A stretch of 64,000 bases of DNA. Origin: Trichosphaerium sp. ATCC 40318. Its lineage: Eukaryota > Protista > Tubulinea. Positions 55 through 27,199 of this stretch are shown in pieces. A program made the translations under genes and the position numbers. Numbering within the stretch: position 1 is the stretch's first letter; every line of letters begins with the position of its first letter. The DNA lies in the NCBI GenBank assembly GCA_038496445.1, contig JALMLS010000216.1:1-64000 (forward strand), in the 5' to 3' direction. Below the pieces are notes generated by a model. The model did no database searches. It had not been told where the DNA came from and saw only the letters and a list, made by a program, of their open reading frames with translations.

Positions 55-2300
55 TTTTACGACAGGAAAATCTAGTGTTCGAACGCGACCGCGAGCTAGC
101 GGTCGGTCAACCGACACGTAAAATACGTGTTCGAAAATATTCGCGAACATACGCCAACTCTGTCAAAAGACAGTGTGCTCCATCTCCAACTCCAAAGCCA
201 ACAATAGGGTCTGTATTGTATTCATCACACCAAACAATAGGCATAGGACAAAGCACAAACCTTTTGGTGAAGGTTTCATAAATAAGCATCTTTTGTATAA
301 TGTTCCTGGGGTTGACTCCTCTGACATTCAAAAACAAGCTATGTGTGACATGTCCAAGGGGCCTTTGTAAAATGAGGGCTTCTTCACTCTCAGATACTTC
401 TTGTTGATAGAGTTGGCAGCAATCCCTCTTAGCAAACCCTTTTGTATTGATGGCTTTATGATGCAGCCATTCAATTTATTGGTGCCTGTCTTCATGTAGC
501 TACATAAAAGTTAAAAATAAAAAAAAAAAAAATAAAAAAACAAAAAACGACGACGTTCGTTTTCGAACACATTGAACGCGTGTTAAAAAATATCGCGAAA
601 ATTGTTACTTACTCCACAAAGAGATGGAAATCTGAATCATTGCCAAAGCTCAAGGAATCTCTAAAATGGACCAAAAGAAGGGCAATGTAGTACCAAGAAT
701 CTGTGACATGAAGTCCCATGGCTGTGTAGAATATGCCAGTCCAGAGTAGCACCTGCCAATACAACTGTCTCCACTTGCAGCTTATAATCCATCTATTTTT
801 TTCTTTCTCCTCTACCTCCGATTCCTCATCTCCGTGTTCTCTCAGCATGGGTTCGTGCTCCTTGTAATCTCTGGTGTAGTTGCCTTCGAAGTGCATCGGC
901 TTCCACCACTTTTCTTCATCCGAGGAGTAGATTTTTCTGACGTCTTTGATAAACTTCTGCAGTTGGTCTACTCCTTCAACAAATGGAAATCTCTCCTAAA
1001 GAAACAAATTAATTTAAAAAAAAAACAAAAAAAAAACCCCAAAAAGCCAACGATTTTACAACAGGATATTTAAGTGTTCGTACACGACCGCGAGCTCGCG
1101 GTCACACGTTCGACACATGAAAACTGTGTTATGAATACTTTAGGGAAAAAAATCAAAAAAATAATCAAAAAAAAAAAAATCAGAAAAAAAAAAAAAAACA
1201 AAAAAAAAAAAAAAAAACAAAATAAAACGAACACGGCCCGCGCGTGTATGTATCGGAAAACGTACCTTGAATGCTGCCTTCAGCTTGTTGTTAGGAGTTA
1301 TTTGAGACTCCAACACATTATCAAAGCTGGCAGCAAAAAACCCATTTAGGCATCTCTTCATCCTCTTGATGGGCATGGTTTTAGCATAAACCAACTGGTT
1401 GGCTATGATAACACCTCTACATAGATAAATTAGTTGAAATGAATTAAAAATAAAAAAAAAAACAAAAAAAAAAAAAAAAATATAAATGGCAGCTACGTTT
1501 ATGAACATGCGCCGCGCGTGTTGCGTCGAACGCGAACTTTAATGGGTAAAAAAAAAAAAAAAAAAATGGACAAAACAAAAAAAAAAGCAAAAAAAAAAAA
1601 AACAACCAACTTACTCAAAACCAAAGATAACATCTCTGTGTTCTCCAATGAGAGTACCCACAATTTTTGTTTCAGTGTTGTGGTTTCCATGGGTACTCAC
1701 AATCATCCAACCAGGACTTGTTGGAGCTAAAAAGAGTATTAGAAGTGGCACAGCAAATAATTACAACTAACGAAAATACAAACACGGGTTTTTCGTGTTA
1801 AAAATATGACCTCGAGCTCGCGGTCGTTAACGAACACATTAAAAACGTGTTATGTTAAAAAAAACAGCAAGCTTGCAGTCAGTTATAAAGAGACTTTTAA
1901 AAAAAAACGGTTTTTAAAAAAGTACACACTTTTTATGTGTACGAAAACCGACCGCGAGCTCGAGGTCAGGTACGAACACGGTAAACATGTGTTGAATACC
2001 ATATACCGAGCAAGCAGTCAGTTATAAAGCAAGACTTTCAAAAAAAAAAAAACGGTTTTTAAAAAGTACACACTTTTTATGTGTACAAAAACCGACCGCG
2101 AGCTCGCGGTCATGTACGAACACATAAAAAGCGTGTTTAAAATCGTACAGCGAGCTCGCGGTCTGTAAAAAAAGCAAAACAACAAAAAAAAAATTAAAAA
2201 AAAAGTACACAATTTAATTGTGTACCAAAACCAACCGCCAACTAGCGCGACTTTCGTACACGCGATATACGTGTTCTAATGCCGCGGCGAGCTCGCTGTT
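55..2300. repeat. Dispersed and tandem ~80-140 bp module centred on palindrome GACCGCGAGCTCGCGGTC
   Basis: Perfect copies at 1086-1103 and 2094-2111; one-mismatch copies at 87-104, 1808-1825, 1950-1967; partial copies near 2150 and 2287; tandem duplication of ~140 bp starting at 1875 and 2014. Confidence 0.9.
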
Positions 2301-2722
2301 GAAAATTAAAGCAAAATAAAACAGTGTGAACCAAAACCAAATGAAAAACAACGCACACGCGTTCTGCGTGTTACGAAACCCTCGTTTGGGTTTGGTTCTA
2401 CCATGCAAAAAAACCGCATGGTAACGAAAAAATCGTACACATGAAAACCGTGTACAAAAACCGTCATTTTTTTTCGAAATTTATTTGAAAAATTAGGGGT
2501 TTTGAAAAAACCATTTAAAAGCAAAAAAACCCCCTTTATTAGTCTTTAAAAATTAAAATAAGACTAATAAAGGGGGTTTTAAAAAAAACAAAGAGTAAAA
2601 AAGAGGTTAGTACCTAGTACTCTCTTTCTCCTGAGCCTGGGCTTACCATCAGCTTTTTTGGAGGGCTCATCCTCATCAGAAAACTCAATATTTATAAGAG
2701 AGAGATCTTCATCTGAGCTCAT
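153..2722 (-). CDS. Multi-exon gene of the element, possibly a transposase (weak Kyakuja/KDZ-like resemblance); 3' end outside the window; one frameshift near 475
   Basis: GT-AG exons 2722-2614, 1726-1615, 1416-1266, 995-613, 499-153 splice in frame (MSSDEDLS...PTSPGWMIV...GVIIANQLV...ERFPFVEG...YMKTGTNK). One extra A at ~475-477 would continue to IEWLHHK...PIVGFGVGDGAHCL. Confidence 0.55.
2526..2580. repeat. Perfect 21-bp inverted repeat with 13-nt loop
   Basis: AAAACCCCCTTTATTAGTCTT (2526-2546) and AAGACTAATAAAGGGGGTTTT (2560-2580). Confidence 0.9.
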
Positions 2723-3764: not shown

Positions 3765-5428
3765 ATGGCCAAGGTAGGAAAGGAAGACCCAAGGTACGGC
3801 GACGGCGTTACAAAACAACTTCGCTTTACGTCGCTGTTCCCTCACTTGTTGGTAGGTGGCTTGTAGAAAGCCGACAAGACGGAAAGAACGTTAACCAATG
3901 GCATTGGTACGCTTTTGCTAAACCTTTGCTATTTTTTTTTCTTCACGCTGTTTTATACATTTATACGCGTGCACTTTCACTCCGTTATCCATTGGATGTA
4001 ATGCCGAATCGCGTTGCTGCCTTTTTACGTTTTTTGTGCTTCTCCTCCGTTGAGCGTCAGTATTAAATTACTAAATCGTATCAGGACTGAAAAAAACCTC
4101 TTTCCTCTGGCCAAGAAGGCATTCACCGACCTTTTCAAAGACATGCAAGTTCCACCACTTGCGCCTGCCGACAAACTCGTCATTAAGACGATGGATAGCA
4201 TTGACGGCGATGTTACATTACAAGGACGCAAAGTACGTTTTTATTTTTTGTGAACAAAAATAACATTTTTGCTTTAAAAATTATTAACATTTGACGTGCC
4301 ATGTATTTTACTATACAACGACATTCTTAAGCTTCAAGTAGGGTCGCGCATTTTTCTTACATGACATTACGATCAAACTAAAGTGGGAGGGCGAACGTAA
4401 TGGAATCAAGGCCAAGGGACTAGTTAAAATTATTGACATCATCTCAGATGATGATGACTGGGTGGTACGCCATTATCGTGACATTATATATTGCTTCAAT
4501 ATTTTTTATTGTACACTTGTTTTGCCGAAGCAGAAAAAAAAACAAAAAACAGACCAGTGGAATTAAAACGCATTGGATAGATTCAAATCACATTGGAAAA
4601 GGAGACTAAGGAGGGGAGGGAAATGAAGGAGCACTTGCGTGCCACAAAAAAAGATTTCTTCAAAACAAAGGTTAAAACTGTGATGGACGCTATGAAGGAT
4701 GGTAAAACTTTTTCTTCTTGGTTTTTTTTTTGGTTATCTTGTCAATTATTTCTAAAGAGCTGATATAGAGTGGCTCACACTTGCCAAAGCTGGTCCTGGT
4801 GCTGTGAAAGCTAAATCCATCGCTCCAGAGCCAGTTGCAAAACCTCCAGCTGGGAAGAAGTTCTCGAAAGACTTCAGGACTGTCAATATAAAATTGACAT
4901 TTAATTGCCCTGCAAAAGTGCGTTGATAACTATTTGTCTGAACTTTTATTTGTATCGGTGTCTCTAACAAGCAACTAGATGTTGTATGGTACTTTACTGG
5001 ATAGCCAACGTATGTCTGCTGTGACTGGAAGCCAGGCCATCATAGCCAAGGGTCTCGGAGACTTTTCATTATTTGGTGGAAGCATCACTGGCAAAACTAC
5101 CAAACTTGTAGAGAACAAGTCCATCGAGCAAGATTGGAGATTTAACACCTGGCCAGAAAACCACTTCAGTAAAGTAGTAATAAAACTAGAAGCTGACGGA
5201 GGACGTACTACACTGACACTTGTTCAAGCTGGTACTTTTAGTTTGGTTTTTTTTATTTGCCCCCTCTTTGGGAATTTTATTACTTGATTAGTGCGCATAA
5301 TGAAACGCTTACGCTTGAAAATAGGTGTTCCTTCAGATGATTATGATAGAACACGTTCAGGATGGATGAGGAATTTTTGGCAGCGATTGCGCGCCGCATT
5401 TGGTTGGGGATTTTCTCTCAAAAACTGA
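3765..5428 (+). CDS. AHSA1: Activator of Hsp90 ATPase (Aha1), multi-exon
   Basis: Spliced N-terminus MAKVGKEDPRWLVESRQDGKNVNQWHWTEKN; C-terminal START-like domain FSLFGGSITG...IEQDWRFNTWP...GWMRNFW. Confidence 0.93.
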
Positions 5429-23481: not shown

Positions 23482-24669
23482 CTATTCTACAGGTTTTTTT
23501 TCCTTTTCCCCATCATCTTTATTTTCCTTTTTAGCAATCTTTGCTGCATAGGCTGGATGACTCAGTTTGTTGAAGGACTACAAGTATTTAATAAATGTGC
23601 AATTTTAAGTAATAGTTGGAACCTTTCTTGTTGGGGTATTGTTATCAATGGCACGCTTCCAGTCACTAGTCTCCACAAACTCATTCAAGATTTTATACAC
23701 TAACGTGGGTATAAGGAACCGCCAGTACATAAGTTTAAGGTACCATGGTTGACGTTCAAGGAAGTATTGGCAACATGTTCTTTATTTTCTGAAATTGGCA
23801 GTCGGACAGCCTTAATACCATCTTCCTCAGCTTTTTTAACTGACAGGCCCTAATAAATTTAATAAGGATTTGATTTGTGGTACATTGACACGTGCTTTTA
23901 ATCTATTATGATCAACAATGCCACCAATGACATAAACTTTCTCAGGATCAACATGAGTCAAAACTTCTGTTGCATCTGGAGATAAGTACCTATAAATCAA
24001 TTACTATAAACAGTACCCTTAAAAGCGCATACACTAATTCATCACTATTCCATAATGAGAGTATGTCTTCGTCATGTTTTTCTAACTAAACAATGTCATT
24101 ATGGTACATGTCACTTATCAAGTGGACCTTCCACGACTGCCAACCAACACGTGCAAGAGCTATCCGCATTTTATCTCCAATGCTTGTCAAATGCACCTTG
24201 AGTCGATGCTCTCGCCTCCTTACATATCCGTATATATCCATTAGTTGCACCACACAGCTTCGTATTTCCTTTTTGTTGAATTTAGATTTTTTTGAACTCT
24301 ATTATGTCTGTATCACGCTACCTTGCCAGTAAGTGAGTCTACAAATCGTAAATCTACCGCCACACGAGGTTTTTGCCACACAATGTCATCTGGATGAGAA
24401 TCGTTGAAGGCCGTTACTAATTTACGAATGGCACGCTTTTCTAGCCTTCGCTCTTGCGTAATTTCAAGGTTTGGGTTTGTTTTAGCTGTTCTGCGCTTAA
24501 CGCGCTTCAGCTCTTGTTTTCGCCTCCAATACGCTTGCACATGTGGTTTTAACCCTAAAAAAGCGTGTGGATCGGGATTTACTTCTTTTTCTTCAGTTTT
24601 GCAGTAACAACGTCTACCTGACGTCTCAAAGCGCAAACCACGCGTTCTCAGCGAACGTGCAATCAGCAT
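23482..24669 (-). CDS. TRM10: tRNA m1G9/m1A9 methyltransferase (TRM10 family), probably mitochondrial
   Basis: YLSPDA...VYVIGGIVDHNRLKGLS...AVRLPI, LNVNHV; Arg-rich N-terminal presequence. Confidence 0.88.
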
Positions 24670-25014
24670 TAGTGCTTATAACCATTTCAATGTGACACCT
24701 GTATGTACTTTAGATGAGCAACCGGCTAATACGGAGAACTGCAATACAGCGAACTCAGCGAGAGTTTATGAACAAAATTACAAATGGAAGAAACTTGACT
24801 GTCAAAGTACTATTCAATCTTTTTATTTGTATCTGGGCTGGTATTCTTTACAATTACCAAGCCAACAATAAGCATAGCACATTGTGCAAGGATCCTCATC
24901 ACGGCATAACTGCAAGTGGAGCTGATACTGATTTGAAATAGCGTAGTGTTCTAAAATATGAGTGAGCACGTGTGCAAACTTGTTTAATTGATTTTAGGTT
25001 GGCTTTGTTTTTCA

Positions 25015-25100
25015 AAAGTTCAGATAACTGTAGCCACGTGTTGTAATTTTGGTCAACACCTATATCTTATGATCGCGGAATACAACTCTCATCACTACGA
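25015..25100 (-). ncRNA. Box C/D snoRNA candidate, copy 1
   Basis: Box C GTGATGA (25095-25089), C'-like TGTTGA, guide GGCTACAGTTAT, box D CTGA (25023-25020); intronic. Confidence 0.8.
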
Positions 25101-25379
25101 AACGCCAAAAAAAAAAAAAAACACCACAAAGGTAAAAAAGGCGTACCAAATGAACAAGTGTGTTGCGGTAATCATCCCGTTACACGTTGCTCCTGGTGAT
25201 AGCCAGGGCATACGAGCGACCAGAGTATTCTAGATAATGCACCAAGAAAATTAACTGGTTGCAACCTATAGAACATCAATATAGCTCTAGATTAACGCTT
25301 CAAAAGATAGTGCAACCGATTAGAGAAGCTTGCTATCGTAAAGAAGCGAAGAAATTTTAAAAGATAATTTTTTTTTCGC

Positions 25380-25437
25380 CATCAGACGTAACTTGGATAC
25401 CATCAGTGTTATATCAGATAATTGTTTTAATCATCGA
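25380..25437 (-). ncRNA. Box C/D snoRNA candidate
   Basis: TCGATGA - guide - CTGA (D') - CTGATG (C'-like) - guide - CTGA (D) in ~58 nt; intronic. Confidence 0.65.
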
Positions 25438-25609
25438 AAAAAATAAAGGAAAAAAAAAAAACAAAGAAAAAAGTAATAACGCGTACCATTGCGGTATAAA
25501 CTAGTGTCTTTGCGCTAGTAATATCTCTTGTACATACTATACCCTGGATCTATTACAATTCATGAGTATGATGGCTCGTGAAGCATTTCGAAAAAATAAA
25601 AAGTTTTTC

Positions 25610-25677
25610 GTTTCAAGTCAAAAAAATCCAGTCATCACATTTTGTCAGAGGCACGGAATAAATATTCTCATACAAGC
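25610..25677 (-). ncRNA. Box C/D snoRNA candidate with SSU rRNA-complementary guide
   Basis: TGTATGA (C-like), guide TTATTCCGTGC, CTGA (D'), GTGATGA (C'), TTGA (D-like). The guide pairs with conserved SSU GCAUGGAAUAA using one G-U pair. Confidence 0.6.
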
Positions 25678-25952
25678 CGATAAGGCGGAAAGAAAAACAT
25701 AAAGCTGACAAAGAGCACTACGTACCGATTTACGATTGGGTGGTGCCACTGTGGCTTTCGTTGATAACACAGCTTGCACTTATCTTTACTATGACGTGAG
25801 ATCAGGATCGCATATTACAGTAGAGATAAGTAAAGCCATGGGAAGACGCCACTGAGCGTCATAGCCAATGCTTAGGTTTTTTTGCGCCACGATACCTTAT
25901 TACGAGGTTAGTATTTGGCGTGTCATAATAAATTTGCTTGAAGAGCTTTAAA

Positions 25953-26040
25953 AAAGTTCAGATAACTGTAGCCACGTGTTGTAGTTTTGGTCAACACCTA
26001 TATCTTATGATCGCGGAATACAACTCTCATCATTACGAAA
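25953..26040 (-). ncRNA. Box C/D snoRNA candidate, copy 2 (paralog of 25015-25100)
   Basis: Box C ATGATGA (26033-26027), box D CTGA (25961-25958); two substitutions relative to copy 1. Confidence 0.8.
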
Positions 26041-26808
26041 AATCAAAAAAACAAAAGAAAAACATCGAAAAGCGCTGTCTGACGTACCCCATTCTTTCAC
26101 AGTTGTATCCTATGAGAATATCAAAACTGAGAAATAACTTGGGAGAAGGTGCTGTTTGCGATAACAAGAACTTATCTGTTAAACAACTAACTTAAGCGAA
26201 TTGTCAACAATAGTCTTCGTTTTTTTTTTCATGCAATTTTGTCTTTGCAACAAAGTGTATGTATCAACCTTTCATGAGCCTCAACCTGTACGATTGCGCA
26301 TTGGTTAGGCTGCGCGAGTTGCAATACTTTGCGCAGGTTCGCTCACAACAACTGCTAAACACCTCAGAAGAGACCACAGCGCTTACTAAGCGACTTCAAA
26401 GTATTGACCACTCTTATGTAGAGCTCATTGTTTAGATAGAGTGAACCCTCAACGACTTTGTTGCTACAGAAAACATAGATTTTACATGCCAAGTACTAGC
26501 CGAAAGTTCAACGTACAAATGGTTTGGTTGTTGGTTGCTTCCGTGTACATGACTGATGTGTGTAGTTTGTAAACGCTTGTTGATGTTATTGGTCACGTGC
26601 TTTTTATTGGGACGGGCAAATAGTTGACCCTTAGTCCGACCTTTTAAGGCAGAAAAGGCACGCGCCTTCAAAAAATACGACAGGTATCTTAGTGTTGTAA
26701 AACACCGTTACAGTACATAGTGATATTGCGCAAGCGTCCCCGAAACAGTGCCGTAATAACTGTTTAAGATCTGTGAATACTTTAGTTCGCTTTAAAGACC
26801 ATAACAAC

Positions 26809-27199
26809 ATGGCTTCAGTTATAAACAAGTTGCGTGGCGATAGTGATAAACCAAAGAAACAGCGTCCAGCGTTTATGGAGAATACCAAATGCTCAGGACC
26901 AAAGTGCGATAGGATAGTCATAGGCGAGAATGAAAGGCGAATAAAATACAATGATGACATTGCAAAGAAACCTCGGTATTGTTCAGTTTGCGGTAAATTC
27001 TACTGCGGAAAACACAAGCATAAGGTACGAAACGAGTCTGGATTAATCTCGTTCATAACTAACAACTTTGTAGTACATGAAGAAGAGAGACGGTGGATGG
27101 AAGTGTAAAAAAACGTGTAAAGGATTGCATCATGTATATAAACCAGATGCACCTGAAGACTATAAATTTGTAGGTCCGCTTGTTATGAACCTGGATTAG
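26809..27199 (+). CDS. Small Cys-rich zinc-finger-like protein, two exons
   Basis: CSGPKC...YCSVCGKFYCGKH...WKCKKTC after splicing a GT-AG intron near 27024-27072. Confidence 0.7.

Follow-up and report, generated by a model that had tools for sequence, protein, structure and literature searches.

Among the described systems, the vertebrate non-coding host genes UHG/SNHG1, GAS5, and other SNHG genes carry one box C/D snoRNA in each of several introns (PMC2780460, PMC12508059). The exons of such SNHG-type genes code poorly, contain short ORFs, and are followed by a poly(A) signal. Fungal hosts (N. crassa clusters I–V; snR72–78, snR57–55–61, and snR41–70–51) are likewise non-coding and spliced, with short introns and only short ORFs, and their snoRNAs lie 41–60 nt from the donor (PMC2780460, PMC3596301), the range reported from the 5' splice site for most intronic snoRNAs of N. 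crassa (PMC2780460). Dictyostelium discoideum, the best-studied amoebozoan and a member of the same supergroup as Trichosphaerium, has short C/D RNAs, some of them in clusters of two to three; its 47 C/D genes are intergenic except for CD38, which is intronic in a protein-coding gene, and no spliced non-coding host is described (PMC8817022). In the unicellular Tetrahymena and Ostreococcus, C/D snoRNAs of similar size are clustered or intronic, but the clusters are intergenic or polycistronic and the intronic ones are found in protein-coding genes (PMC3273799, PMC7671301). The literature searched, with subscription papers mostly outside it, contained no report of a non-coding multi-intron snoRNA host in Amoebozoa. 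A green-algal precedent in Chlamydomonas is possible.

In the locus of the marine amoeba Trichosphaerium, four predicted introns each contain one box C/D candidate, the exons hold short ORFs only, and a poly(A) signal follows, as in the vertebrate genes; the predicted spliced, non-coding structure, the short introns, and the distance of the snoRNAs from the donor resemble the fungal hosts. The sequence-only reading had compared this layout with the animal UHG/GAS5 genes. The architecture does match, but it is not animal-specific, since UHG-like hosts are documented in fungi (PMC2780460, PMC3596301). Compared to the vertebrate hosts, the locus is far more compact (introns of 154–196 nt and snoRNAs of 53–76 nt), shows no sequence homology, and contains no snoRNA assignable to a SNORD family. 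The fungal clusters encode conserved guides for conserved sites, whereas the guides here match none of those families and, unlike in the fungal clusters, one snoRNA is duplicated within the gene; no detectable sequence is common to the locus and the fungal hosts either. The mechanism of one snoRNA per intron is textbook knowledge; what would be new is its distribution and the three very small guide RNAs. We consider it probable that the minus strand carries a non-coding snoRNA host gene of the UHG/GAS5 type.

Locus layout and predicted splicing

The window, i.e., the whole 64-kb stretch of DNA that was analysed, has a GC content of 35–43% and short, dense introns, in keeping with the published Trichosphaerium genome (37.7% GC; PMC10521059). 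The features of the locus and its neighbours are as follows, with the basis of each in parentheses.

ATG at 24669, minus strand: TRM10 gene (Pfam tRNA_m1G_MT)
24822–24950, minus strand: last exon, ending at AATAAA (sequence)
24951–25146, minus strand: intron 4, 196 nt, GTACGC donor, CACTCAT branch-like motif, TAG acceptor (sequence)
25147–25332, minus strand: exon 4, 186 nt, non-coding, two moderate hairpins (ORF scan, folding)
25333–25486, minus strand: intron 3, 154 nt, GTACGC donor, TAG acceptor (sequence)
25487–25549, minus strand: exon 3, 63 nt, non-coding (ORF scan)
25550–25725, minus strand: intron 2, 176 nt, GTACGT donor, TACTCAT branch-like motif, TAG acceptor (sequence)
25726–25895, minus strand: exon 2, 170 nt, non-coding (ORF scan, codon bias)
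25896–26087, minus strand: intron 1, 192 nt, GTACGT donor, TACTAAC branch point, AAG acceptor (predicted splicing)
26088–26560, minus strand: putative 5' exon or exons (inference)
26516–26464, minus strand: candidate intron, host-sized, 53 nt, GTACGT...TAG (sequence)
26588–26610, no strand assigned: CCAAT/CACGTG/CCAAT motifs, candidate promoter common to the host and the zinc-finger gene (sequence motifs)
ATG at 26809, plus strand: zinc-finger gene, divergent from the host locus (weak IBR/zf-AN1 matches)

The four introns proposed in the sequence-only reading (26087–25896, 25725–25550, 25486–25333, and 25146–24951) were recovered with exactly these coordinates, and all have the form GTACG[CT]...AG. 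In intron 3, where the branch motif is weak, an alternative AG at 25329 or 25298 is possible. Among short host introns with a branch motif, lengths of 40–59 nt are over-represented (11 seen versus approximately 4 expected), and the four cassette introns are therefore three to four times longer than this cluster. The earlier claim that they are enlarged thus holds against the 40–59 nt cluster, but the published mean intron length of the genome is 75 bp (PMC10521059).

The AATAAA predicted to follow the last exon was located at 24827–24822, where it closes the exon on the minus strand with a U-rich tract behind it; AATAAA is also present 30 nt past the stop of the zinc-finger gene and just 3' of TRM10. 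At the other end, the candidate intron at 26516–26464 together with the CCAAT/CACGTG motifs points to a transcript start near 26560–26600. The host transcript may thus begin approximately 350 nt upstream of the boundary originally drawn, as the extra donor at 26516 suggests. With regard to a possible 5'TOP start, three pyrimidine tracts were found upstream. As a separate observation, the N-terminus of TRM10 (24669–24590, minus strand) is rich in Arg, Ser, and Leu and, by eye, looks like a mitochondrial targeting peptide.

Candidate snoRNAs and their possible targets

Each of the four introns contains one cassette, so that every snoRNA candidate is single within an intron bearing splice signals at the sequence level.

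25958–26033, minus strand: snoRNA A copy 1 (intron 1), 76 nt from C to D (sequence)
25618–25671, minus strand: snoRNA B (intron 2), 54 nt (sequence, weak alignment to the SNORD18 model, E 4)
25382–25434, minus strand: snoRNA C (intron 3), 53 nt (sequence, best weak Rfam match E 0.63)
25020–25095, minus strand: snoRNA A copy 2 (intron 4), 76 nt, C GUGAUGA, D CUGA (74/76 identical to copy 1)

The boxes are placed as expected of box C/D RNAs, with C close to the 5' terminus, D close to the 3' terminus, and 50–100 nt between them. Copy 1 of snoRNA A has box C AUGAUGA (26033–26027), a probable C' GUGUUGA (25997–25991), and box D CUGA (25961–25958); no clear D' box was found in snoRNA A. Internal D' and C' boxes are clear in snoRNAs B and C, which have complete C-D'-C'-D sets: C AUGAGAA, D' CUGA (25648–25645), C' GUGAUGA (25638–25632), and D UUGA (25621–25618) in snoRNA B, and C AUGAUUA, D' CUGA (25417–25414), C' CUGAUGG (25406–25400), and D CUGA (25385–25382) in snoRNA C. 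The C boxes of these two deviate from the consensus by one to two mismatches, whereas snoRNA A is canonical. The deviations in the C and D boxes of snoRNA B may be able to pair with each other. A plausible U-rich/A-rich terminal stem flanks snoRNA C; external flank duplexes were no better than those of shuffled sequences (p 0.2–0.8). The four candidates of the sequence-only reading are all present as cassettes, one per intron, but they represent three distinct snoRNAs, the first and fourth being copies.

The two copies of snoRNA A are identical at 74 of 76 positions from C to D, compared to 26/48 in the upstream and 30/67 in the downstream flanks. The snoRNA is thus better conserved than its intronic surroundings (74/76 versus approximately 50%), a comparison confined to this within-locus duplicate. 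Within the locus, this identity of the core is the best indication that the C–D interval is the functional unit, although gene conversion could also explain it.

The C-like boxes of introns 1 to 4 start at +55, +55, +53, and +52 from the donor, a fixed spacing of 51–54 nt between donor and C box, and the D box lies 49–69 nt ahead of the acceptor in all four. A U-rich spacer follows each donor; those of introns 3, 4, and 1 rank as the top three among the 101 GTACGY sites. We searched the 64 kb with a pattern consisting of a donor, 40–55 nt, a C-like box, 35–65 nt, and YTGA. It gave six matches at five distinct donors, four of which are those of the host introns, against a chance mean of 0.12 matches; none of 100 shuffles reached six, for a pattern that was written after the sequences had been viewed. 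Such post-hoc design cannot explain four matches within 1.1 kb on one strand.

Two other sites were noted. At 3907–4060 (plus strand), a GTACGC donor with a U-rich spacer has no acceptor for 154 nt and no C box fitting the donor-C-D pattern; this may be another enlarged intron. In the last exon (24901–24833, minus strand), a C-like GTGATGA is followed only by a CAGA approximately 60 nt downstream, which is probably a chance occurrence and possibly a decayed fifth cassette.

An Rfam search of the locus found no family at the gathering score. Below that threshold, snoRNAs B and C gave weak matches to box C/D families (E 0.6–8), and snoRNA A had no match at E≤10. The resemblance of snoRNA B to SNORD18 was not borne out by its guide, for which LSU A649 was not a top-ranking site in the four surrogate LSU rRNAs used.

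Box C/D RNAs guide 2'-O-methylation of the nucleotide paired five positions upstream of box D or D' (the D+5 rule). Pairing was placed by this rule in a target search on surrogate rRNAs rather than Trichosphaerium rRNA; one of them, a yeast-type rDNA unit retrieved by means of a 28S motif, matched known yeast numbering at 19/19 sites checked. One locus from a human-gut sample (L047) was left out of all analyses as a precaution. Many bacterial assemblies (loci L063–L150) include contaminant contigs with nearly complete eukaryotic rDNA units of the yeast type and of other types.

The D' guide of snoRNA B can form an 11-bp duplex with one G-U at the equivalent of 18S A799 in three independently fetched 18S genes, and 2–7% of control 18-mers pair as well. 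The D guide of snoRNA A can form an 11-bp duplex with two G-U at yeast 18S C149, a result equalled by 11% of the controls, and pairs less well in two other 18S genes. Overall, the A and B guides pair over 10–11 bp with surrogate 18S, where a box C/D guide calls for at least 10 nt, and 2–11% of the controls do equally well. The guide of snoRNA C was not above the controls on surrogate rRNA; it possibly pairs just upstream of the A site in some protist 18S genes, a set selected by a guide-derived pattern. Matches of A and C in that guide-selected set are circular and were not counted, and the joint adjacency of A and C targets was not significant on independently fetched 18S genes. A lone match of guide A to a viral contig (L151) was dismissed as a chance 18-mer. 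Neither C149 nor A799 appears in the Dictyostelium methylation table, in which Am796 sits in the context of yeast A796 (PMC8817022). C149 (snoRNA A) and A799 (snoRNA B) are plausibly the 18S targets, but with weak statistics on surrogates they are leads, not results.

Coding potential and alternative explanations

In agreement with the earlier statement that the joined exons lack a long ORF, the longest ORF in the canonical exon chain, determined by a script, is 34 aa. Even when 2880 alternative splice combinations are considered, no ORF exceeds 60 aa; ORFs of 54–60 aa arise with alternative acceptors of intron 4. Stop-free minus-strand frames had codon-bias scores of −0.15 to 0.00, against medians of +0.04 for coding and −0.08 for off-frame sequence, in a test that separates the two weakly. 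A Pfam search of the exon frames gave nothing near the cut-off. The GC content is slightly high in exons 2 (0.45) and 4 (0.42).

The exons also fold. Exon 2 contains a long imperfect hairpin:

25768–25840, minus strand: hairpin of 73 nt, approximately 33 bp (folding)

Its z score is −5.6 (0/200 shuffles), for a window chosen afterwards. It occurs as a single copy in the 64 kb, where nine other places fold comparably; strong palindromic hairpins were also observed at 1800–2400 (minus strand). In its predicted shape it resembles a pre-miRNA or an RNase III substrate and could act as either; its Rfam miRNA matches were far below gathering. Amoebozoans are known to produce miRNAs (PMC11014262), and the host RNAs of snoRNAs can contain RNase III sites (PMC12508059). 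We also looked for H/ACA snoRNAs, defined by a hairpin-H-hairpin-ACA order and an rRNA-pairing pocket 14–16 nt from the box. This class was rejected for exon 4, where no pocket was found, and for exon 2, where the one match is possible only if the long hairpin is disrupted. It is improbable that the locus is a mixed host in which, besides the C/D introns, the exon 2 hairpin would be cut by RNase III (for a microRNA or for RNA destruction) and the 18S pairing would serve lineage-specific marks or processing.

The main rival accepts real, intronic snoRNAs and takes the exons as a long 5' UTR of TRM10, making the host protein-coding. TRM10 lies on the same strand, its start is approximately 155 nt beyond the host AATAAA, and no CCAAT, TATA, or CACGTG motif was found in the gap between them. 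However, the AATAAA and its U-rich tract stand between the last exon and TRM10, and the leader would measure approximately 1.1 kb and contain some ten upstream ORFs at least 9 aa long; we regard this reading as unlikely. It is very unlikely that the host codes for a short peptide (13–60 aa) or that the introns belong to the 3' UTR of a small, unrecognised gene at 26560–26090. Host donors are often weak, so that other splice patterns are possible, and the slightly GC-rich exons 2 and 4 and the 54–60 aa ORF could be read in this way, but no frame is clearly coding by codon bias or matches Pfam, and the alternative intron 4 acceptors lack the branch-like motif present before 24951.

Polycistronic snoRNA precursors cut by RNase III are known from plants, yeast, and Dictyostelium. 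The locus might accordingly produce an unspliced or partly spliced precursor cut at the exon hairpins, the splice signals being relics or of minor use. The strong hairpin of exon 2 and the moderate ones of exon 4 fit such a precursor, RNase III is documented to cleave snoRNA precursors (PMC12508059), and the Dictyostelium clusters are intergenic (PMC8817022). Nevertheless, despite diverged flanks, each of the four cassettes has retained a donor that fully matches the consensus and lies at a constant spacing, each has a branch-like motif or acceptor, and not every pair of cassettes has a hairpin between them, which makes this explanation quite unlikely. Chance motifs or a decayed, unexpressed locus would agree with the lack of an Rfam family, and the identity of the copies possibly reflects recent duplication or gene conversion and not selection. 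The statistics of the donor-C-D pattern, the fall of identity at the box boundaries, and the common spacing of three unrelated cassettes argue against this possibility, which is highly improbable.

Counted against the host-gene reading itself were the absence of an Rfam family, the marginal targets, the deviant C boxes of snoRNAs B and C, the weak separation by codon bias, and the fact that protein searches found no orthologous locus. We nevertheless favour a non-coding host because the architecture, the conservation of the duplicate core, and the lack of coding potential fit it; the same features uphold the original proposal of such a gene in this protist.

Proposed expression and implications

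From the sequence we infer transcription, splicing, RNA accumulation, the targets, the fate of the exons, and independence from the TRM10 transcript. In the proposed scheme, the host would be transcribed by Pol II from the minus strand, starting near 26560–26600 back to back with the zinc-finger gene, and its RNA would be polyadenylated without encoding a protein. The spliceosome would remove the four enlarged introns, and Snu13, Nop56/58, and fibrillarin would load on each intronic cassette. Debranching followed by exonuclease trimming to the protected C–D unit would yield snoRNA A (76 nt) in two copies along with snoRNAs B (54 nt) and C (53 nt). Their most likely role would be to guide 2'-O-methylation of rRNA, with 18S C149 (A) and A799 (B) as the best guesses, and the joined exons, with their short ORFs only, would probably be degraded.

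If this interpretation is true, either the UHG-type arrangement is older than the divergence of amoebae from animals and fungi, or it evolves repeatedly in genomes rich in introns. The annotation of such genomes would then also be missing non-coding snoRNA host genes of the UHG type.
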